Counted from the stretch's first letter, positions 6,046-50,224 are shown. The stretch: DNA of 64,000 nucleotides from Marsupella aquatica (GCA_973895155.1 OZ316897.1:3938211-4002210), one strand, 5' to 3'. Notes: generated by a model from the letters alone, not told the origin. Program-made: numbers and translations.

Positions 6046-7094
6046 ATGAAGGACAAGTTTGTGGGGATTGTGTACTTTATAGGCAATGGGTGCTTAGGTG
6101 CCACTTCTGCGTATCGAAGCAATGTCTGAGGAGATTACACGTTTCTTCGAGACATGGTTGCACACCAGAACTTCCAGCAGCAACGTGACCGAGAAGAATT
6201 TACGCCACGAGGTGTTCAAGCATAATTTAAATAGAGTATGTCAGTGAGCACAATGGTATGAAGTCCTCTTACAAGCTGGGACTAAATAGTTTCGCAGACC
6301 TCACTTTGACGGAGTTCAAGAGCCCGTATGTAGGGAAATTGATTACCACCAATTCCGAGCCTCCTTTGGCCGCCATCGATTGGAGGCCAAAGGGGAGCCG
6401 TCACTGCGGTACCTTTGCTAATGACATCCAGTTTTATAGAAGTTTGGTTACGAAGATTACTAACGTTTGGTCATTAGGTGATACATGTTAGGTTGTAGTG
6501 AATTATTGGGCCTGTACAAGTTTGCTATAATTCAGTTATTATTTGTGTAGTTTAGGAGATATTTATGATTTTTGCATGAGATTACCTGCATTTTCTATTG
6601 TTCAGTATTCGAAATAGTTTACACAGAACTTTACACTTTGCCTGGATCATGGAGAACGGAGAGATTGACGATGAAATGGGTCCATCCCTAACAGCTCGAG
6701 ATGACTCCTGCAAGAAGCGAAAGGTTTGAATGCTCTGGAGCTTTTCCTTGCGGACACTTCGAGCGTTTAAAGGCTGAGTTTTTCTTGGTTCAGACAAACA
6801 CGCATGCTCTCTCAATCCCTCTCTCCGTGATTAGAAAAACTGCAGGTGTCTATGTAAACCAGAGCCCTCACTCTCTTGATCAATATACCCCGCTGTGGCC
6901 CTGTTTCTCTGAGTGACCGAAGCTATCTGAATCCGTGAATAGAAAGTAAACAAATTTTAGATGGTGGCATAGCTTGTTTGCAGTTAAAAGCTTATGAAGA
7001 TTCCATAGATGGACGAGAGAAAGTGGCAGCAAACAATCAAAAAGCTTTGCAACTGGCAGTGGCCAATCAGCCCGTGTCTGTTGCAGTTGACGCG
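6046..7094 (+). pseudogene. Papain-family (C1A, RD21/XCP-like) cysteine protease pseudogene
   Basis: Fragments appear in the correct order: I29 propeptide (EEITRFFETWL, EKNLRHEVFKHNL, HNGMKSSYKLGLNSFADLTLTEFKS), mature start (IDWRPKG/AVT), WIMENGEID..TARDDSCK (~6643-6714) and SIDGREKVAANNQKALQLAVANQPVSVAVDA (~7002-7094). It is frameshifted, and the catalytic QGxCGSCWAF and His/Asn segments are not found. Confidence 0.85.
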
Positions 7095-7580
7095 GTCCGA
7101 GATGTGATTGAGAAACTCAATCTCTCATTGCAATGGCCCGTCTGTGTCTCGTGACTTCCTTCATAAATTATACATCCCTGCAGGAAACGTGATCCCCTCT
7201 CGATAATTGTAATTGGAAGGAATTGTGCGCTTACCCGTAAGTGTGCATAAACCCTTCTATAGGGTTTTGCACTTACCTAGTATTCTTTTAGTGCAGCCCT
7301 CGTTACGTTTACAAATCGCGCAAAATGGTATGAAAAACAGGGGAAGAAGGGGAGACCTTGCAATTATCCAGGGTTTTCACTATAGAGAGGTCAATACGAC
7401 CAGGATTGAATGTCGCCAGCTGTTGCCTAGAAGGCATCCATCCTCTTTCTCTTCGAATGGATTAGGTTTCTATCTCATTCTCGGCGTTCTGTGGTGGCCG
7501 CCACTGCATTGCCGCTGGAGCAGCAGCACACGGGCAGTAAAATAGGTGTTAATTCCAAGTTCTAAAACACAATGACATAA

Positions 7581-8030
7581 GCATCCTACAATACCATTAA
7601 AGTGGAAGACACTACCTCGTCCATTTTCTCTCACTAGAGTATACATTCAATTCATTGCAGATACTTCTACCATCGTGCTGGTTAGTCTCCTGGTATGTTA
7701 CAATACTACAAATGTAGCAGTCACTAGCTCGTGCATTGTCTTTCACGAGAGTAGACATGTAATTCATTACAAATATCTTCCACCATCTTGCTGGTTAGTC
7801 TCCTAGTATGCTACAATACCACAATTGTGGCAGTCACTACCTCGTGCATTTTCTCTCACTAGAGTACACATGTGGTTCATTGCAGATAGTTGTACCATCT
7901 TGTTGATTACTCTGCGAGTATGTTTAAATCCCGAAAATGTGGAGGCCACTGTCTCGTCCATTTCTCTCACTAGATATGCAAATTCATTGCAGATAGTTTT
8001 GCCGTCTTGCTGGTGAGTCGTCTCCTGTTG
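7581..8030. repeat. Degenerate ~112-bp tandem repeat, ~4 copies
   Basis: The motif CACTAcCTCGTgCATTtTCTcTCACtAGA recurs at 7610, 7722, 7835 and 7947, each followed by TTCATTgCAgATA...CaTCtTGcTGgT. Confidence 0.85.
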
Positions 8031-8140
8031 CATACCAGCTGGTCTGCCTTGCAATCTAGGACACAGGATAACATCTGTACAATTTTTTGTCACCTGGCCG
8101 TTTCGGTCCCTATGAACATTAAGTTTGATTCTTTTTCTCT

Positions 8141-10452
8141 CTAATATCCGAAGTCCTCGTAAATAGCTTCCCGCCCTCCTAACCATACCAACAAGCTCTT
8201 TCTCAAAGCAGGGTTACAACAGATGTACCACTTGTGAATGTCCCTGTTTGCTGACACGTCCTGATTCACATCCCCTTCATCAATCCTCCTGCTATTTACC
8301 GACAAGCACACTCCTTGAAGCTCCTTCCATAGAGCTTTGTGTTCGTTTTTCACCTTGTTGACAAACCCTGTGACAAACAAACTCGTTGAAGCAGGAAGCT
8401 TGGGATGTCTCGTAAATAAGTCCTTAACAAGCATGAGGTCCTCAGCTCGGAGGGTCCACAGAAGATGTAAGCGTGAGAGATCTAGTCCAGGCAGCTGAGC
8501 TAGGAGAGGCGTGATACCAACACCACCGGCAACAAAAGCAACGCGCTCGCCTCCGTCTCCTTGCTTGATAGTAAATTCTCCGCCAAAACCCCTCAAGGGG
8601 ACTACCAAAGGTTGTCCACAACAATGGCCTTTTAGATTCCGAGTGGACAAGAAATTAGTCACATTGCCAACTCTTCGGACAGTAATCTCGAATTCTCCCT
8701 CAGCAGGACCAGCATCACCACCTGATGGTGAGCGGGAATCGAAGTCAGAAGAAGGTGGTGGGGAGGAGACGGTGAAAGTGCGGACATAGTCGTCATTGAG
8801 ACTCAACGGATCATTGTCACGCATGTGGCTATAACCCCTCTCCAATTCATCCGCAAAACTTAGTGCAACATGCTGCCCGGATTTCCACTTGACCTTCTCG
8901 TTTCCAGGATCTGCAATTCGGAAGCCGTAGCGGGAGATGGTGGGTGTTATGACCTCCTTCCTGATCAATGTTGCTGTCAGGCCGTTGTCCTCATCCACAG
9001 CTGCTCGTTCTGAAGGGAGGTAGCGGGTCAGGGGGTTGTAGGGACTCCTCTCTCCCAGATCACCTTTAAAGCCTAGACCATTCTCCACAAACCGAGCGGC
9101 CTTCAATGTGATTCTGACGGCTAGATTTGATCTGGGGAGCTGCCTGTGGGCATCCTTCCCAGCCAGGATCTCAGCGGTGCCTGTGACGTAGAGAACATCT
9201 CCCGTGTCGAAGTCTGGGAACACAAGGCCTGCTCTGGGGGTTGTCTGCAAGTTTCCTAAGGTCTGGTAGAGCCGATTGCCGGAGTATTCCGGGTAGATGA
9301 GAACGGTCCCCTTCTCTGCCGAATTGGACTCCACCCGGACGAAGCCGGGAGGCCCGCCCCGGTGGTTCGTGTCCATATCTAAATGATGGTGCGATGAGGA
9401 GATGAAGAACATGTCAACTTTGGCGATCAAATTGATTGCCGCCGCTGGAAGGGGTAGCGAATCGGATACTAGTTTGGGTTTTGGAAGTTGTGGAGATATT
9501 CTCTTTTTGTTAAGATATTTTGGACAATTCCCTGTAAGACGAGGAAATTGGTCAGAGATATTCACTGTGATATTGTTCACAATGCTTGAATTCACCAGAT
9601 TGAGAAACAGAAGGCAGAAACAAGTAGGTCTCAATCTGACCATTGAACTTCTTCTAAAAGCCACAACAAGAAGTAAACATGTAGATCGCAGCCTCATACT
9701 GAAGAATCGAACACATGGAATCCAATTTAAAAACAGAAGATAATCATATCATCGATCTCAAAGTCAGTATTGCTTGCTGCTGAAATCTTCTTGACAAAGA
9801 GCACAAAAAACAAGGAGATCCCATACTCATCATTGAAATCCTCTTGAAAACCAGCCTATTTCTGACTCAGCATTCAAATCGTACTGAGACAACGAATAGA
9901 AAACATACAGAACTCTGACTTATAATTCAAATCATATTCTGAAATGGAACATAACAGAACACAGATCTCAAACTCACCCAGGCTTTGCTCGATGTCAACA
10001 GCCAATTGCACCTCCCCCTTCTCTATCTTCCCAGCGACCATCTTACCATACAGCTTTATCCTCTTCCTGTTCTGCAGATGGATGCCCAAACCACCCACCA
10101 TCTTCCCCGTCCCTTCCTCCTCCTGCACAGCAACCCCATTCTCTCGATTCTCCCCAAATAAAGCCTCAGCAACTGGATCAAACGCCGTATCGATCTGCGC
10201 CCTGATCCCTATGATCGACTGGCTGATTGGCCTTGAGAATCCAGGCTCCCCGCCCCACACCGTCGTCCAGGGCCAGTTGTTCTGGTCCAGCGTGCCCAAA
10301 GCTATGAGAGGCGAGATCGTCACTGTGTGGCCCGCTTGAGGGCTGAGGAAGGGCGTCGTTGGGTTGTAGCCCTCCGGCACTTGGAGCAGATGGTGAAGTG
10401 CTTGCTCTCCTTCGTGCCAGGGAAACTCCTCTTCGTCATCAGTGTACGCCAT
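8141..10452 (-). CDS. Pyridoxamine 5'-phosphate oxidase-like FMN-binding plus FNR-type FAD/NAD(P)-binding oxidoreductase, 621 aa, 2 exons (10452-9978, 9531-8141); fungal-like
   Basis: A 446-bp GT-AG intron (9977-9532) joins ORFs 9874-10452 and 8141-9697 in frame and restores QSLG|NCPKYLN. Motifs: WHEGE, GTLD..WPWTTVWGGEPGF, MDTNHRGGPPGFVRV, YPEYSGNRLYQTLGNL, GQHVAL, SHMRDNDPLSLNDDYVRTFTVSS, FVAGGVGITPLLA and C-terminal YEDFGY. Confidence 0.9.
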
Positions 10453-11293
10453 TGTTCGTGCACAACTCTTGTTGCCTTGCTGAGCTCTCTAGGCTTTCCC
10501 TCTGCTCACCCTGTAATCTCTACAAAATGAAATTTGGACTATCAGCAGCTCGAGCAGAATTCAGGATTCCCTCGGACAGAAGACAGCTCCGTTGTTTCTT
10601 TGGGTTCATGGAATTGCACTCCTCTCGATGATTCTAGACTGCCTGGGCATCCAACCGGCCAAATTCTTCGCCTTTGTTAGATAATCAGATTTACTTACGT
10701 TCTGGGGTCTTAAAATGGGTACTATCTCGGCCGATTGCAGTCCGCTTTCCTATCCGAAAGGAAAGGATTGCTTGGTTCATTGAATGTGAGAATCTGCATA
10801 GCCATCAGAATGGTGATGAAAGTCAGGACTGAGTGTTCGTTCTGGGAAAGTGATTATGATACTCGGTCAACTTCCCGCCGCCATTATGTCGTCCATCGTC
10901 AGCAGGTTTTCCTGTCGTCATCAAGATTTGATGATTTGATCATTCGCTGAGGCTGCCAGCTGAGGTCATTTGGTGAGGGACCAAGAAATGTGCTTAATGG
11001 GGCCCAACTTGAAACCTACAATAATCGTGAACAGGTGAGGGATTTGCTTATCAGATACCAAAATGAAATGTGTTACTTGGTACGACCCCTAGTGATCCAT
11101 GTCCTTGAGTGACCTTGAAACAATGTACCTAAAACTTGGGTTCTATCAAGTAAGGCAATTTGTTTTGGGGTCTGATCAAGCAATTTCCTCTTGACCAGGG
11201 TCCTCTTTTGAAAATTGCTTCTTGGGGTTTATCCAGGAGTAGAATCCTATATGTTCTTTTACTACCGGGTAGCCACTACCCCAATGGCTCTAA

Positions 11294-11663: not shown

Positions 11664-12371
11664 TAAACACTAAAATATGCATGTGTTCTTCTACTTAGGT
11701 TTGATTATATAATGTTATAATGGAAATTTTTTTGGTTGGATTAACATGACATTTTTACTAGTCATGAGATAGGCCTGATGGTGCCAAAATGCGTGTTTCC
11801 CATCAATGCCCAATTGACCACTCTCCCCAACTCACGCACTCCTTGAAATCCAGTTGTCAATCAGTTACACTATTCGGGACACTATCAAGGATTTTGTGCA
11901 ACTCACAAGCATTGGGCTCATTTGGCAGTAAATAATTATATAGTGAGCCTTGTCAAGCATATCAAGTGAGATGTTCAGGGAGTCAGCAAGTCGGTCTAGC
12001 TAGCAACTGGATTTGAAAGAGAGTCCAGATTCTAGCTCATGAACTGGACATGAAATGTCATGCAGCAAACAACTCTTGGCTTGGACCTTATGATTGTTCA
12101 GTGCTTGCATTTTGGGTGCACAGCTAGCTCATTGATTTCTGCTCAGGCTAACTAAGGTCATCCAAATGTTGAATGTGGATGCTCAGGTAGTCCACCAGGT
12201 CAGGCTCAGCTCCCACCTAAACTGTCTATGTCAATCCTTGCCTCATTAAGCTCCACCTTGCCTCTTCCTGCCTCAAACTAAGCTCATCCCCCAGTTTTTT
12301 AGTTTGTATTTTAAAGAGAGTTTACCAAGAGAATTTAGGATTTGCCACCCTGGCTAATTTTATTACTCCTT

Positions 12372-12562
12372 AAAAATTACCCTGCCATGGGCTATGCTAA
12401 AGCTGGCGAAGGATGAGTCCACTACCAATTACAATTCCATGCCAGGGGCCATGCTAAAGCTGGCGAAGGATGTGTCCACTTCCCATTACAATTCGTTAAA
12501 AATTACCCTGACATAGGCCATGCTAAACCTGGCGAAGGATGACTCCATTACCAAAATTACAA
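12372..12562. repeat. Three imperfect copies of a ~58-71-bp unit
   Basis: The core GGCcATGCTAAAgCTGGCGAAGGATG..TCCA.T.CC.ATTACAA occurs three times. Confidence 0.8.
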
Positions 12563-12758
12563 GACCATGAATCGAATTGTAAAACTATTCGAGCATGAGT
12601 CCCGCTGCAAGGAGTAGCTGCACATGAGTATAGTTCGAAATATTAAAATGAATTGAGCATGGGACAGTCCCGGCATCCCTCTCTCCATTTTTGGACATCA
12701 TAATCCTTGACTTCTGGCTTTCCATCATTGCTTCTGAAGTCCGCCATAATGGCAATCG

Positions 12759-12762
12759 AAAA
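12759..12762 (-). terminator. Putative Pol III terminator (TTTT) shared by the tRNA pair
   Basis: This is the first T4 run on the minus strand, 15 nt past tRNA-Leu(CAA). There is no T run between the two tRNAs. Confidence 0.55.
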
Positions 12763-12777
12763 GCATTTGACTTGGAT

Positions 12778-24800: not shown

Positions 24801-27800
24801 GAGGAAGCCTATTGCATGTTGGAATTGTGGCAAGCCAGGCCACATGAAAAGGGATTGTCAAGTAAAGGTCCCTACTGCCTCTGCTAACGCAGCATCGAGC
24901 TCGCATGAGGTAGATTTACTCGATGATGATGACATATTGTGATGTCAAGGTTATGCTCTCAATGTAGTGTCAAATCCAGGTAGTGATGACTGGATTCTAG
25001 ATAGTGCATGTACTTTTCACATTTGCTCTAGAAGAGATTATTTCTGTTCTTACACGGTTTCCAACGGGTCAGTGTTGATGGGAAATGGAATCCCATGTCA
25101 AGTTGTTGGACTTGGATCTGTAAGATTTCAGATGTTTGATGGTGCTGTAAGAACGTTGAGGAATGTGAGACACATTCCCAGCATGATGAAAAATCTCATT
25201 TCACTTGGAGTTTTAGAAGCAAATGGCCATCAGTGGAGTTCTGCTAATGGTGTCCTTCAGGTTTCAACTGGTACTAAAGTTGTATTGAAGGGAAAGAGAC
25301 ATAGCAATCTATACGTTTTGGAGGGCTGTGTAGTCTGTGATGAAGCAAATGTAACCTTATCTCATGAGGAGACGGCCCGGCTGTGGCACTTCCGTTTGGG
25401 CCACATGAGTGAAAAAGGTTTGGTTATTCTTCAGAAGAAAGGATTACTTTCTAATTTGCAATCTTGTAAGTTGGAATTTTGTGAGCACTGTGTGCTAGGG
25501 AAGCAGCACAGGAAACCCTTCGGAGTTGGAACTCACACCAGTAAGGAGGTACTTGAGTATGTACATAGTGATGTGTGGGGTCTAGCCCCTACTCCCTCAC
25601 ATTCTGGACGATTATACTATATCACGTGCATAGACGATTACTCAAGGTATGTGTGGATATATTTTCTACACAGTAAGTCTGATGTTTTTGCCACTTTTAA
25701 GGAGTGGAAAGCCCAAGTTGAGAATCAGACTGGTAATAAGGTGAGATATCTACGATCGGATAATGGCGGTGAATACAATTCCGGGGAATTTGGAACGTAT
25801 TGTAAGGAGCAGGGGATAACCCGCCATCTCACAACAAGTTATACTCCTCAGCAGAATGGTGTTTCTGAGAGACTCAACCGAACACTATTGGACCGCTCGA
25901 GGAGTATGTTGAGTCAATCATGCTTACCACATGAGTTTTGGGCTGAAGCTGTCAACACTACAGCTTATTTGGTAAATATTTCTCCATCCAGTTCTATTGG
26001 ATTCAAGACGCCATTTGAAATGAGGTACGGGCGTCCAGCAGATTATTCACATTTGAGGATTTTTGGATGTGATGCTTATGTGCTTACACCTTCCCAGCTT
26101 CGATCCAAGCTGGAGTCCAAGTCGAAGAAGTGCATTTTCCTTGGCTATCAGAAAGGTGTGAAGGGTTATAGGTTATGGGATCCAGTAACCTGTAAACTAA
26201 CTGTCAGTAGAGATGTGTCCTTTAATGAATCCAGATCATCAAAGGAGGGGGAGAGTTCTCAGGACTCCCATACTAACAAGGGGAAATCTCCCATCCCGGA
26301 CCCGGTTGAGGGGGAGATTAGTCATGATGTTGTTCATGATAGGAGAGGTGGAGAAGCTCCGGGCTTGGAGCTGGTTCCTGTGATGGAACAAGAGGAGCAG
26401 ATTGTTGCTAGGGTACCTCAAATTCAACCAGCAGCAGCAGCAGATCAGCCTGAGTCATCTACTAGAAGAACTTCCAGTCGTTCTACTAGAGCTCCTACCA
26501 GGTATGATCAATGGGCAGACTCATCTAAGCTAGATGACATTGACATTGCACCTGATGATGATGATATGGCTTTGATCTTGGAAGAAGGAGAGCCTTCTTC
26601 GTACAGTGAGGCTTGTGCTTCAGAGTAGAAGCATGAGTGGAATGCAGCAATGCAGAGGGAGTTGCAATCTTTGAGTGACAACAAGACATGGGAGCTGGTG
26701 GAGCTTCCAAGAGGTCAGCAAGTGGTGGACAGCAAGTGGATTTACAAGTTGAAGGACAGTCCTTCAGAGGGTGGAGATAAGATCTACAAGGCAAGGCTTG
26801 TTGCCAAGGGGTTCACTCAAGAGAAAGGAGTGGACTACAATGAGGTCTTTTCACCGGTGGCTAAGTATTCCACAATTCGGATCTTGTGTCAGCTTGTTGT
26901 GTTTTTTGGTCTGGTAATGGATCAGATGGATGTTGTTACTGCTATTCTCTATGGCAACTTGGAAGAGATGATCTTCATGAGACAGCCAGTAGGATTTATG
27001 AAGAAGGGCCAAGAGAGCTTAGTTTGCAGATTGCTCAAGTCCTTGTATGGATTGAAGCAGTCTCCCAGACAGTGGAACAAGCGGTTTGATGATTTCATGT
27101 TTGCTCAAGGTTTTACAAGGATGGTGTATGATCCTTGTGTGTATACGAAATCAGTCAAGAATGATGTGTTTGGGTTCATCATTCTAGTGATCTATGTGGA
27201 TGACATGCTGATTGTGGCTAAAGATCAATCTGAGGTTGACAGTCTCAAGGCGAAATTGAGTGTTGAATTCAGGATGAAGGATCTTGGTAAGGCCAAGAGG
27301 ATCTTAGGGATGGAGATTTTTAGGAACTCTGAGACTGGACAGTTGTGCTTGAGTCAAGGCCAGTATGCGAGGAAAGTACTTGCACGATTCAACATGGAGA
27401 ACTGTAAGCCAGTGAGTATTCCTTTAGCTTCACATTTCAAGTTATCATCGGCTTTCTCTCCTACGGATGCTGTGGAGAAAGGTCTGATGGCTAAGATTCC
27501 TTATGAGAAGGCAGTAGGCAGTCTAATGTATTTGATGACTTGTACTAGGCCTGACTTGGCCCTAGCGATGGGCAAGGTTAGCAAATTCATGTCAAATCCA
27601 GGGAAGGTACATTGGGAAGCTGTGAAGTGGATTCTCAGGTATCTGAAGGGAACAGAGGACTATGGATTACTATTTGATAACAGATCAAATAGAACGTTAG
27701 TTGGCTATGTAGATTCTGACTATGGAGGCTGTCTGGATACAAGGAGATCTACAACTGGGTTTGTATACACTCTTGGAGGAGGATGTATCAGTTGGAAATC

Positions 27801-28713
27801 TACCTTGCAGAAGTGCATATCTCAGTCTACTACAGAAGTAGAGTATGTTGCAGCAGCAGAAGCTGCAAAGGAAGCAATTTGGTTGGATAAGTTGATCGCG
27901 GAGATGGGTTTAGAGCATGGAAAAATGACTCTAAACTGTGATAGTCAGAGTGCTCTTCACTTGGCTGCTAACCAGGTGATGGATAGCAGGGTGAAGCACA
28001 TTGATATCAGGTACCATTTTATCAGGCAAGCAGTGTCTGATAAAACTTTTGAGCTAGTCAAGATTGATGGAAAGCTCAATCCCGCTGATGTCTTTACCAA
28101 AGTGATTCCTTTGGAGAGTTTCTCAAGACACCGTGTTACTTTGCAGGTTTTGCAGTTGTAGTGCAAGTAGAGTTATTTAGCAATATGTGACTATTTGTAT
28201 ATGGATTACTCATTCCTGTTAGACTACGGCTTAGTTCTAGTTAACCCTTAGTTAACCCTTGTGGTTTTTAGGGGGAGACCTGGTTTGGTGATTGTCTAGA
28301 ACTTCCCGCTGAGGATTCCATATGGTAGCATTTAGTCCAGTCCCCAAGACAAGAGTCAAGGGGGAGTTTGTTAGATATTGCTCTAGTCTTGGGACTCTTG
28401 TGCTAACCACAGTTAGGCTAACTTGGGTTAGGACCTAGCTAAGGTTAGCGGTAGTGCTGTTGTGCATATAGCCAAGGCTGATGCCAGACCCTGGTGGAAC
28501 TTAGGCTCATTGTTACGGAGCTAGTTGAGAAATAGGGAGAGCTTGTGCTGTGGATGCTTGGTATGGCCGGTCGGCCTAGAGTGCAGTAAAGCTCTTGTGT
28601 ATTCCTGTGGACGTAGCCTCATGTGGAGGTGAACCACGTATCTCTTTGTGTCGACTATTGTGCGTTGGATAGCTTCATGGGCTTGCCGTTGCGAATGTCG
28701 TCTATGCTCAACA
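21871..28713 (+). mobile_element. Full-length Ty1/copia (Tork/Tnt1-like) nested in the gypsy RNase H
   Basis: TG...CA LTRs at 21871-22219 and 28369-28713 differ by 7 transitions and one 4-bp indel by eye. TSD CCAAA (21866-70, 28714-18), PBS TGGTATCAGAGC (22222-33) and PPT AAGGGGGAG (28358-66) are present. Confidence 0.97.
23887..28161 (+). pseudogene. Copia gag-pol in a single frame with two in-frame stops (TGA 24940-42, TAG 26626-28)
   Basis: KFEVEKYDG, CWNCGKPGHMKRDC, WILDSACTFH (PR), LWHFRLGH..CEHC, VHSDVWG, LRSDNGGEY and PQQNGVSER (IN), IYVDDMLI (RT), GYVDSDY and KHIDIRYHFIR (RH) all lie in one frame. Confidence 0.92.
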
Positions 28714-28718
28714 CCAAA

Positions 28719-30415
28719 GTGGTAATCCACACAAATAGCTCGTCGGCCGGGTACTTCAGTTCTAAGCCAAGGCTGAACCCCAAGGAAATGCGCTGGCAGA
28801 TGTTCTTGGCGGATTTCGATTTTGAAATCCGCCACGTTCCAGGGAAGACAAATACGGCAGCAGACGCGTTATCGCGTAAGGACCAACATCGTGTCAATGG
28901 GATCACGATGCTCGAATTCGAGTGGCCAAAGGTTCTGGCCGCGGCGTATGGGGATGACAGGTTAGCTAAGGATTGGCAAAGCAATGGGGGTAGCCGGGGC
29001 AAGGGAAGGCACGTATCATTGGGGTTGGATACGACGCATACTGTCCAGTTATGGCGATACAAGCAGAGGCGTGTGTAAATACCAGAGTCTCTAAGGTTAG
29101 AGGTTCTGCAAAAGTACCACGACTCGCCCTGGGGAGGGCACGGAGGACAAGCCGCTACGTATCACAACATGTCGCAAGATGTGTATTGGCCGGACATGAA
29201 GCAATCGGTCCTTCAACACGTGCAAAGTTGTTACTCGTGCCAAAAGAACCCAACGGTCTATAGGGCAAAAGGAGGACTGCTGCAACCCTTACCAGTAGCT
29301 GCGGCTCCATGGGAGTCTATCTCCATGGACTTCATTGTGGGATTACCTGAGTCCCACAACAGTAACTCCATCTTAACAATCGTGGATCGTTTTTCCAAGA
29401 TGGCGTATTTCTTGCCTACTATATGAAGATGGTTTCGGCCCGAGAGGTTGCCGGTCTAGTATTTGACAATGTCTTCCAACAGTGGGGATTGTCATTGCAT
29501 ATCTTGTCCGATCGCGATACCAAGTTCACGGGCCATTTCTGGAAGGCATTGTTCCGGTTATCCGGAACGGACCTGACCAAGGGATCAGCGTATCATCATG
29601 AGACAGATGGCCAAACATAACGGGTTGATGGTATTGTGGAGGACTACTTGCGTCACTTTGTGATAGCCAATCAAAAGGATTGGGCGAAGCATTTAACAAT
29701 GGTCGAGTTTAGGTATAACTCAACCAAGCATTCGGCGATGGGGTTTGCGCCGTTTGTGTTGGCCATAGGGAGGATGCCAAGGGCGCCCTCCTGGTTTATA
29801 AATCCGGAAGCTTGGCGGACAGAAAGCAAGGTTCCTTCGGCGGACGATTTTATTCGAGAGCGGCACCTAGTTGTGGAAGCGGCTACCAAGGGTATGACCC
29901 TTGTCCAAAGTCGGTACAAGGAGCAAGGGGATAAACATCGACGCCAGGTAAGCTTTGAAATTGGGGAGAGCGTTTGGTTGCAGTTGAGACCTGAGCAATA
30001 CCACGGGAACATAAGTAGGAAGCTGGCTCCCAGATATGCGGGGCCCTATTGCATTATACGATGGGCCCACAAGGATAATCCGGTTTCGGTGGTGTTGGAG
30101 ACACCCAAGGAAATGGGCGTGGGCAAAAGCTACCATGTTAGCCGGCTCAAGAAGTTTGTCAAAAACGATGATCCCAACCGGGATCAGGTCTTGCGTCCTG
30201 ACGCCATGCTGGTGGAGGACGCTAAGGAGTTTGAGGTGGAGGCAATTCTGGCCCACCGTTACAAATGCAAGTTGGGAAGGCAAATCTTAGAGTATTTGGT
30301 GAAGTGGGCTGGCTATGATCAGGCCGAGAGTACTTGGGAACCGGAAGAAAATTTGGGTAATGCCTCAGAGATCCTTGGAAGCTATCGTAAGCGAAGCGAC
30401 CTACCCCCATTGTGA
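28719..30415 (+). pseudogene. pol: Gypsy pol 3' part (RNase H end, integrase, chromodomain), disrupted
   Basis: Motifs GKTNTAADALSR, HDSPWGGH, VQSCYSCQ, PWESISMDFI, SDRDTKFT, KLAPRYAGPY and the chromodomain FEVEAILAHR...YLVKWAGYDQAESTWEPEENL. Confidence 0.92.
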
Positions 30416-47791: not shown

Positions 47792-50224
47792 TTATAATGC
47801 AGGCTGAAGGTGGCCAGATAAATCCTCGTCGTCGTCACCGTGCCATAAAAAATGGGCATAGCTTCCGGTGTGATATGGGTTTGTAGGATCTATGGAAATT
47901 GCTTCGCGGTATGCTTTCTCCGCCCTTCGACGATCCTTGAGCCCCAACCATAGAAAACTTGCCCACCGTGCCAGAATGTCTCCGTCTTCGCAATCCACTC
48001 TCAAAGCTCGATGGAAAAATGCTTCAGCTCTGGAAAATGAAGGCAATGGAGACAATCTCAGCTAACAGATTCATACGTCATGCGGGTAATCACATGCAAT
48101 TAAGCTCACTAGAAGGAGATGACAGGGACCCAATTATATTATGGGATAGTACAGAGCACTCAGAGTGCGATCACTGCATGTTGAGTAAAACCCTACTACT
48201 TTTGACTCACGACACAAACATCAAAACTCTGAACACACATACCTGACGTTATCGTGGCGTACAGCATAAAGGAACTGAGCGCAATTTGCAAGCAGCATGG
48301 GATTAGAAGGCTCGGCTGTGATAGCGTGCTGGTACTCGAGATCTGTTCGGTCAAAGCAGGCATAGGCGTCCGACTCCATCTTCGTCGCCACAGGCGCCAC
48401 TAGTATCCTCAACGTCTCCTGATCCAACTGAACGTGGTGATAAGGTACTCCGGGTTTCAATTCCAATTCGCGCACTGTTTGCTCCAAGAGACCCCGGTAC
48501 GAGCGAAGCTGTCCATTGCTTCGGAGCTCCCCCTCGGTCGGCGGTTGCCCTGGACCTGTCCAAGCTCTACTCGAACTCTTGTCATCGCTCACGCCCGGTG
48601 ACTTCGGAGAAAATAGTGCTCCTAGAGATTCTCTCGGCAAAGTCCCGCGGCCTCCCGAGCCGAAATCCGCGGAGTCAAAATCCTTCTCAGAGAACATGGC
48701 ATTTCTTCCAGACCCTGCTCCAGAATGGTAGGAATCGCCGTCCTCTCCACCTGCAACGATAATTGATCCCCGGCCGACTCCCCCTGGCCCGTAGTTTCCA
48801 AAGCCATGTCCGGAAGAATCACTGGGGATGGGAGAAGGTTGGACAGATCGGTCAAATCGAACAAACGACAATCCCCTCCACCTATCGGTTGCTTTAGCAC
48901 CGCCACCCCTCTCGACCTGGGTTTGCAATGTCGACACGAGTTCCGTGGGAGGATCCGGCGCCATAACAGCGCCCATGGCAACGCTACTTCCAAGAGAAAA
49001 CACTGTGAAGTTGACTAGGAGGATCATCACGGAGACCATTAACGTCGGCGTGCAAGAAAATACTTGCTGAAAAAGCCACACGAATGAAGCATGCATCTCC
49101 CTGTTGACCATCGACATAAGATGCTGGACATTCATATCTGAAACCAGAGTTTGGCGCAATTGAAGAGTGTAACTCTGCAGCTCCCGAATCATGAAAACCA
49201 TAGAATTGAACGCCTTGTTTATAGCACAGACTCCTTCCCTTCCTCCCGCAGCCTGTGAACTATTTCTCTTGCGCAAATTCCGTAGAGAGTCTGGAATTGA
49301 TGTGCATTGCCCTGAAGCTCCGATACCTAGAGGTACCTTTGCTGCCCTGCTGTCAAGGCTGTGCACTCGCATTGAATCATCGTCTCCGAAGCTGCACACC
49401 TTCGCCGTCTTGCGCTTCAACGACGCAGGCCTCGAGATGCTGTTCACTCCGTCCAGATGCTGATCCACGAAGCTCAAATCCACTCTGTTGGACGTTCCTG
49501 CTCCTCCTCGAGGATGATGGTCGCTTCTGTCCATAAACTGCCTGTCTTTGACAAAACTAGGGGCCGTCACATCCACAGCTGATGACGCTTCGGCACCTGC
49601 GGTAGAAGCAGTACCCGACTCGTTTTCTCTCGTCCTACCTTGAGACTCATATCGAGCTGACTCGCTTCTCGACCACCCTGCTCTGCCGCTCTCCTGTAAA
49701 GAAGGGTTGATAGGTTGAGCAACATCTACATCTAACCGCTCAAAACCTTGGTAGGATTGCTCCGAGGTCTCACAAAAGTCCTGATCCGGTCTCCTCCATC
49801 TATCTCCAGGGAAGTCATCGAAGCGAGTGGCACTCGGCATCAGCCCCCCGGCCTCGGATTTCCATCGAAACAAGCCCGACGTACAACCCTGTTCGGGAAA
49901 TCCTAGGCACGACCTCAAAGACTCTGTCCGTCTTAGATTTGAGGAAGAGGCCCCCCCCCTCAGGCCTTTCTCAAAGCTCCGCGAACCCAGGCTAGGAAAC
50001 CCGGGTGGAGGAGCCCCTCCATCTGCACTCGCTCTATGGGAAGCTTGCTGCCTCCGAGATGACGACCCGCGGGAGCTGGAATCAGATGAATCTGAAGAAC
50101 GACGTGCACAAGGATTTCGCTGACCATCAACCACAGCATCAATCAACAGACAAGGACGCGAGACGGGTCGGGGAGAAGACCCTGAGAGAAGTTGCCATTG
50201 AGCCGGTAGAGCCTCCAAACCCAT
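47792..50224 (-). CDS. Plant TPR-like superfamily protein (At1g07280/At2g29670-like), 739 aa, 2 exons (50224-48243, 48029-47792)
   Basis: The conserved block KAFNSMVFMIRELQSYTL...EMHASFVWLFQQVFSCTPTLMVSVMILLVNFTVFS is present. C-terminal TPRs (YQHAITAEPSNPMLLANCAQFLY, AEAFFHRAL, AEKAYREAISIDPTN...YAHFLW) are joined by a GT-AG intron at 48242-48030. Confidence 0.9.

Follow-up and report, generated by a model that had tools for sequence, protein, structure and literature searches.

The window analysed here, a 64,000-nt stretch of DNA from Marsupella aquatica, carries on its minus strand (10452-8141) an intact two-exon gene with a product of 621 amino acids. ORF calling and the sequence itself gave coordinates and a reading frame exactly as an earlier sequence-only reading had claimed them, with a CDS totalling 1866 nt (621 codons plus stop; Table 1). 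All four motifs quoted in that reading are found in the window protein. One of them, QSLG/NCPKYLN, spans the splice junction and is created by joining the exons after the first base of a Gly codon. The splice is backed by a related contig (L002) whose ORF of 624 aa has no intron, and also by an intron at the same site in two liverwort-type genomic loci (L001 and L003). The two exons were searched separately (window:9979-10452:- and window:8144-9529:-), and for properties of the whole protein the intronless P0002 was used, which is an 81-84% identical relative and not the window protein itself.

Table 1. Features of the gene and its surroundings, in window coordinates
Feature	Position	Strand	Description
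Papain-like I29/C1 fragments	about 6100-7150		
112-nt tandem repeat	7587-8019		the 3' flank of the gene runs into it
3' flank (probable 3' UTR)	7916..8140	-	conserved with Calypogeia fissa; blastn L001 10997-12743 vs window 9654-7916, 81%
Exon 2	8141..9531	-	462 codons after the split Gly codon, plus stop at 8141-8143
Exon 2 product	8141..9531	-	predicted second, FMN-type split barrel and FNR-like FAD/NAD(P)H module
Intron	9532..9977	-	446 nt, phase-1 spliceosomal, GTGAGT...TTACAG, 37% GC; in the Gly codon of QSLG/NCPKY
Exon 1	9978..10452	-	475 nt; ATG at 10452; 158 full codons plus first base of the Gly codon; from ORF and sequence
Exon 1 product	9978..10452	-	predicted first, divergent split-barrel domain; residues 1-170 of the ortholog model form a beta-barrel
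5' flank (UTR or core promoter)	10453..10594	-	conserved with C. fissa; blastn L001 9842-10548 vs window 10594-9931, 77%
Two tRNA-Leu genes	12777-12952		
TPR-like exon	48221-50224		nearest Atlas clusters all Streptophyta; lead-level evidence

The host of the gene is a leafy liverwort and not an angiosperm. The remark of the sequence-only reading that no angiosperm ortholog is known is therefore true but uses the wrong yardstick. As that reading had placed it, the gene lies between the papain-like fragments and the tRNA genes, both of which were located in the window, and the plant TPR gene that it had noted in the same stretch has a counterpart, at the level of a lead, in a Streptophyta-type TPR-like exon. 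Ty3/Gypsy and Copia elements occur in the window, and the surroundings of the gene are rich in transposable elements (TEs) and LTRs. No terminal inverted repeats were found bracketing the gene, so no transposon carrier was seen. Base composition was also considered as a mark of foreign origin and set aside as uninformative, since GC3 is about 0.5-0.68 in the gene, in a host ORF and in the fungal orthologs alike.

A word-index search with exon 2 returned three liverwort-type sequences ahead of all others. The best match comes from Calypogeia fissa (P0001, 84% identity) and lies on a 17.2-Mb contig. It is followed by P0002 (81% identity), a Logan contig from run SRR6371231 with an uninterrupted ORF of 624 amino acids, and by P0003 (76% identity), a Logan contig from run SRR33208280. 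Exon 1 is 87% identical to C. fissa. At the DNA level the window and the C. fissa locus share about 2.9 kb, comprising the two exons and the intron together with 142 nt of 5' flank and at least 225 nt of 3' flank; the intron DNA aligns at 70-74%, and intron and UTRs taken together at 70-81%. The contig L002 has no intron and otherwise aligns through both exons, as a spliced transcript would, and no poly(A) tail was found on it, while L003 is a genomic locus whose intron, at the same site, is about 658 nt long. Sister species, in which the sequence-only reading had suggested looking for the gene, thus do hold orthologs, among them one on a chromosome-scale contig with plant neighbours.

Among the four liverwort-type copies, Nei-Gojobori estimates for exon 2 gave a dN/dS of 0.14-0.22 at a dS of 0.44-1.04. 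The two window exons were also aligned, each as its own fragment, with 72 fungal homologs; the window protein agrees with them at 77 of 77 positions that do not vary in fungi and at 99 of 108 that are nearly invariant. The substitution pattern points to a gene that is maintained under purifying selection in liverworts. It bears on the alternative that the transferred gene has by now fallen silent or begun to decay in this genome, as the TE-rich DNA and the fragmented papain-like gene alongside might suggest. Against this, the frame of 621 codons is intact and its splice sites canonical, dN/dS is 0.15-0.22 when measured against the three other copies, every family-invariant residue is retained, and a relative supplies the spliced, transcript-like contig. 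We therefore consider a relic unlikely.

After the three liverwort-type sequences, all named matches among the best 120 of 3163 belong to Pezizomycotina, the remainder being unnamed metagenome proteins. Exon 2 is 65% identical to Trichoglossum hirsutum (P0004) and 64% to Geoglossum umbratile; the next matches, at 52-58%, come from Leotiomycetes, Lecanoromycetes, Coniocybomycetes, Candelariomycetes and Eurotiomycetes. Exon 1 agrees with this, being 64% identical to Trichoglossum. When 1.84 billion cluster representatives were searched exhaustively with HMMER, 225 clusters matched at E <= 1e-30. Thirty of these were looked up for names, some of them being without an organism name, and those named included Sordariomycetes, Pezizomycetes, Taphrinomycotina, Mucoromycota, Mortierellomycota, chytrids, an amoebozoan (Ceratiomyxa) and an oomycete (Pythium); there were no plants among the 30. 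The clusters neighbouring the family in the Atlas belong to Ascomycota, Basidiomycota and Pseudomonadota, with no plant. The sequence-only reading had described the family as bacterial and fungal, a view that the distant members in Amoebozoa and in an oomycete contradict.

The phylogeny was inferred with IQ-TREE (LG+C20+F+G4, PMSF) from 58 rows and 440 columns homologous to exon 2, and support is given as ultrafast bootstrap/SH-aLRT. The four liverwort-type rows form one clade (100/100), which together with the Geoglossomycetes and one metagenome sequence (P0008) makes up a clade of eight rows (100/99); a sister relationship of the liverworts to the Geoglossomycetes alone is weaker (81/47). 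This larger clade lies inside the Pezizomycotina under nodes supported at 99/98 and 97/93, with the Pezizomycetes, the Mucoromycota and the chytrid group outside it, and the tree otherwise follows fungal classes. Nesting within the Pezizomycotina, which the sequence-only reading had named as the sign of a transfer, is accordingly what the tree displays, near the Geoglossomycetes. Constraining the 48 Pezizomycotina rows to exclude the liverworts was rejected modestly (delta lnL 26, p-AU 0.037), with six unnamed metagenome rows counted as Pezizomycotina by their position after the tree had been seen.

This result is relevant to the proposal that the gene was inherited vertically from an ancient ancestor and lost in all plant lineages but some liverworts. 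The family is wider than fungi, with distant members in Amoebozoa, an oomycete and bacteria, and an AU rejection at this p-value is all that the constraint test sets against vertical descent. The gradient of identity is hard to reconcile with it, however, as the liverwort proteins share 64-65% with Geoglossomycetes but about 43% with Pezizomycetes and 37-44% with chytrid and Mucoromycota members. In addition, the liverwort clade sits several well-supported nodes deep in a tree that tracks fungal classes, and no other plant sequence was seen above 488 bits in 5.8 billion clusters (best 120 of 3163 matches). Vertical inheritance is in our estimation very improbable.

The intron offers a marker that is independent of the tree. 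In the Trichoglossum ortholog (L004) a phase-1 intron of 69 nt occupies the same Gly codon (...GAG CAG AGT CTT G/gtatgg...(69 nt)...tttag/GC AAT TGC CCG AAA TAC), and because it interrupts the frame the ortholog is annotated there as two adjacent genes. In Stipitochalara (L005) an intron of about 52 nt shares codon and phase. The comparison of intron position with fungal orthologs, which the sequence-only reading had raised, has thus returned identity in both. A further 46 of the best 120 matches are short ORF calls from metagenomes, most of which start just upstream of GNCPKY or a few residues after it; this is the outcome to be expected of a prokaryote-style gene caller, and the intron is therefore widespread in the fungal family. 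Since codon and phase are the same in fungi and liverworts, it was fungal genomic DNA that moved, and not bacterial DNA or cDNA.

At this site the liverwort introns measure 446 nt in the window, 618 nt in L001 and about 658 nt in L003. The AT-rich intron of the window had been described as far longer than is typical of ascomycetes, which stands in view of the fungal 52-69 nt; judged by position and phase, it is not a plant-gained intron but the donor's fungal intron, kept and enlarged about seven times. A degenerate periodicity of about 53 nt, seen in the window's intron and in that of L003, is a weak signal, and hints at growth by tandem duplication.

That the gene is physically integrated in a plant chromosome, and does not stem from contamination, is indicated by its genomic context. 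The C. fissa ortholog lies 6.5 Mb inside its contig, adjoined by genes for oleosin, Aha1 and COG3; the window contributes plant-type neighbours, and the enlarged intron is common to the liverwort loci. Outside the gene, comparison of the C. fissa locus ±10 kb with the 64-kb window by blastn and six-frame tblastn showed no synteny, which implies that the surroundings were rearranged or that the gene changed its place. Contaminating fungal DNA, or a chimeric join in the assembly, would explain the high protein similarity to fungi, and fungal reads are to be expected from leafy liverworts of the C. fissa type, which harbour ascomycetes in their rhizoids (PMC7062687). Yet no sampled fungus exceeds 65% identity, as opposed to 84% for C. 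fissa, and the introns of 446-658 nt, set against 52-69 nt in fungi, can be aligned between two independent liverwort assemblies. Moreover, the C. fissa copy is deeply embedded beside an oleosin gene, and only the gene itself, with no co-transferred fungal flanking DNA, is common to the window and fungal loci. Contamination thus seems extremely unlikely. Transfer in the reverse direction, from liverwort to fungus, or from a third donor to both, is hardly credible either: an unrooted tree alone gives no direction and P0008, of unassigned origin, falls in the same clade, but the family occurs in most fungal classes in a species-tree-like pattern, was absent from other plants in the searches above, and widely carries a short intron at the same site in its fungal members.

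Turning to the protein, all Pfam and NCBIfam matches remain under the curated cut-offs. PF01243 scores 19.9 bits on exon 2 of the window and 20.1-27.9 bits on the orthologs, below the gathering threshold of 28.1. TIGR04025 reaches 43.8 bits on exon 2 (E 1.5e-11, partial cover of the profile) against a cut-off of 170, so that the protein is related to this family but not a member. FNR-type equivalogs score about 20 bits and FAD_binding_6 19.2 as compared with 21.1 bits, again below the cut-offs. At E <= 0.01, PF10590 was found neither in the window exons nor in the orthologs. As true PNP oxidases are recognized by PF01243 together with a C-terminal PF10590 (PMC4556617), the protein is not to be named a PNP oxidase (PdxH/Pdx3).

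Structure prediction was more informative. The AlphaFold2 models of the ortholog P0002 have a pLDDT of 86.4 at full length and of 93.5 for residues 1-335; the N-terminal half was folded separately because fold searches with the whole model are dominated by the FNR module. A sequence search of this half against the PDB gave no match, and here the fold search alone was informative. In the P0002 model the C-terminal ~275 residues form the FNR module (Z 19.7 to 4eh1, 19.6 to 4wqm and 17.5 to 1gvh), and residues 190-320 a split barrel (2htd: Z 9.8, rmsd 2.5, 119 aligned; HupZ 7kpz: Z 9.7). This second barrel superposes on the split-barrel proteins 2htd and 7kpz with an rmsd of 2.3-2.5 Å, and Foldseek assigns it a probability of 1.0 to many PNPOx-like proteins. 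The part encoded by exon 1, residues 1-170, folds into another barrel that is weakly homologous to the second (hhalign E 1.3e-4, 53% probability), and the intron position separates the two. The fusion of a PNPOx-like domain with an FNR module named in the sequence-only reading thus holds for the FNR module and a split barrel, but two barrels precede the module instead of one.

By the predicted fold of P0002 the protein would belong to the split-barrel (PNPOx-like) proteins. For the FNR-like module, the modelled fold is accompanied by the RxxT/S flavin motif and the GGxGxTP nucleotide motif, and binding of FAD and NAD(P)H is predicted. RTFTVSS, AGGVGITP and the terminal ...EDFGY with its C-terminal aromatic residues occur in the window protein and do not vary within the family. 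PNPOx-like proteins form homodimers whose flavin is bound where the two subunits meet, and the tandem barrels would make up a single-chain pseudo-dimer. As the model suggests, the protein probably works as a two-flavin reductase that is self-contained and driven by NAD(P)H. A cytosolic location is expected; no obvious N-terminal targeting sequence was noticed. As far as the literature was searched, no characterised member of the family was found.

Taken together, it is highly probable that this is a functional nuclear liverwort gene for a two-flavin reductase, acquired as genomic DNA from a Pezizomycotina ascomycete near the Geoglossomycetes. Matches, tree, intron site, sister-species orthologs and purifying selection all bear out the fungus-to-plant transfer that the sequence-only reading had proposed. 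On this explanation the gene would have passed as genomic DNA from a filamentous Pezizomycotina ascomycete, the donor being closest to the sampled Geoglossomycetes, at a time before the four liverwort-type sources separated. The phase-1 intron of the fungus would have come along and would still be spliced, its length having risen from about 50-70 nt to 446-658 nt. As for the protein, it would consist of two tandem FMN-type split barrels, forming the pseudo-dimer, followed by the ferredoxin-NADP-reductase-like FAD/NAD(P)H module, and electrons would run from NAD(P)H through FAD and FMN to a small-molecule acceptor.

Ascomycota live in the rhizoids of C. fissa and related species, and within liverworts associations of this kind are confined to the Jungermanniales (PMC7062687), which offers a plausible contact route for the transfer. 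A more far-reaching scenario may be drawn from this, although we regard it as speculative and rather doubtful: the donor might have been a bryophyte-associated ascomycete near the earth-tongues (Geoglossomycetes), the gene might have reached the ancestor of the ascomycete-hosting Jungermanniales by way of their intracellular rhizoid association, the reductase might act on a fungus-related or oil-body metabolite, and the intron may have been enlarged by tandem copying of ~53 nt. If true, this would provide a datable example of a donor spliceosomal intron adapting to the splicing system of a plant.

The case combines independent markers, namely identical intron position and phase, several liverwort sources, a chromosome-scale plant context and purifying selection. 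It suggests a donor close to a single fungal class and a recipient within an order noted for ascomycete symbioses, and it can serve as a model for DNA transfer between eukaryotes, for the retention and reshaping of foreign introns, and for the role of a widespread fungal two-flavin reductase.

The closest known systems are Pezizomycotina proteins annotated as 'oxidoreductase-like' or 'FAD-binding FR-type domain-containing', such as those of Trichoglossum hirsutum (M1813_007305), Stipitochalara longipes and Hyaloscypha variabilis, none of which is characterised. They agree with the liverwort protein in length (about 590-630 aa), in the order of the three domains, in sequence (57-65% identity, 77 invariant residues) and in the phase-1 intron in the same Gly codon. 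The liverwort gene is set apart by residing in a plant, by an intron 7-10 times the length of theirs, and by a longer loop following RTFTVSS, a trait found in part in Trichoglossum as well. Full-length collinearity, the same domain order and the shared intron site place the liverwort gene, at the level of sequence, in one orthogroup with these Pezizomycotina PNPOx-like/FNR oxidoreductases.

More distant are the bacterial PNPOx-like plus FNR fusions of Pseudomonadota (PF01243, PF00970, PF00175), in which a split barrel is likewise joined to an FNR module, and the FMN-dependent PPOX-type flavoproteins of TIGR04025 (MSMEG_1061/DR2398), to which the NHRGGPPGFVR region aligns, albeit at the sub-threshold score given above. 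In contrast to both, the eukaryotic proteins have an extra N-terminal barrel and are about 100 amino acids longer. The FNR modules of flavohaemoglobin, cytochrome b5 reductase and NOX dehydrogenase (4eh1, 1gvh, 7rom, 8qq5) match the modelled C-terminal module with Z-scores of 17-19.7 and an rmsd of about 2.7-3.0 Å over 208-231 aligned residues. The RxxT/S FAD motif and the GGxGxTP motif of these modules recur in the liverwort protein, whereas identity is 15-20% and the partner is a split barrel, and not a globin, cytochrome or membrane domain.

Transfer from fungi to bryophytes is established, and most catalogued cases rest on BLAST and trees and concern intronless genes. Our literature search found no description of this oxidoreductase family or of its transfer to liverworts. 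Dong et al. (2025, PMC12513842) list 1,809 HGT families for streptophytes and describe HGT in bryophytes as frequent and often lineage-specific, with few introns and LTR-rich regions. The gene presented here resembles the fungus-to-bryophyte transfers catalogued there (PMC12513842) in donor kingdom, recipient group, scarcity of introns and TE-/LTR-rich surroundings; it differs in that a spliceosomal intron of the donor is demonstrably kept and that the donor can be narrowed to the vicinity of one fungal class. It is thus a new and unusually well-marked example of a known phenomenon, whose unusual feature is a donor intron that was kept and has grown.

The acquired flavoenzyme gene changed its neighbourhood after the split of the two liverwort species. 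The orthologous genes of the window and of the Calypogeia fissa locus have no neighbours in common; oleosin, Aha1 and COG3 lie within 10 kb of the C. fissa gene, and none of the three occurs in the 64-kb window. The C. fissa ortholog also carries one unit of the 112-nt repeat on its 3' side. The repeat has thus moved along with the gene.

The enlarged liverwort introns (window 9532-9977, and positions 78-736 of L003, a liverwort-type genomic contig) have a degenerate periodic pattern, with a period of about 53 nt. Under permissive TRF settings a period of 53 with 2.2-2.7 copies is recovered, and the autocorrelation peaks at a lag of 53, about 3 SD over the mean. As the unit of about 53 nt is close in size to the fungal intron (52-69 nt), this pattern suggests that the liverwort introns may have grown by tandem duplication.

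The other elements of the window are compiled in the table. The papain-like fragments include an I29 propeptide motif and a NQPVSVAVDA-type C1 segment, and belong either to a pseudogene or to an intron-rich gene. For the 667-codon exon, the nearest protein-atlas clusters are all Streptophyta TPR-like proteins (score 0.93), and the exon itself has no Pfam match.

Further elements of the window
Feature	Position	Strand	Details
Papain-like protease fragments	6098-7154	+	short ORFs in differing frames
112-nt tandem repeat	7587-8019		directly 3' of the flavoenzyme gene; 3.9 copies, 77% matches
57-69-nt repeat	12360-12554		three copies, ahead of the tRNA-Leu pair
Two tandem tRNA-Leu genes	within 12360-12952		anticodons CAA and AAG, 10 nt apart
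Ty3/Gypsy element ORFs	18400-30400	+	protease-RT, SH3-like domain, chromodomain
Copia element	about 23878-28161		gag, integrase, RVT_2; appears complete; interrupts the Ty3/Gypsy ORFs
Open exon	48221-50224	-	667 codons

On the fungal side, the Trichoglossum hirsutum ortholog (GCA_026026815.1, locus L004, 3476-5392) is annotated as two genes of 167 and 463 aa. This record is a public annotation error, which arose because a 69-nt intron at L004 3960-4028 was overlooked. The three-domain family also has distant members outside the fungi, in Ceratiomyxa, an amoebozoan, and in Pythium insidiosum, an oomycete. Other transfers may have taken place in the course of the family's own evolution.
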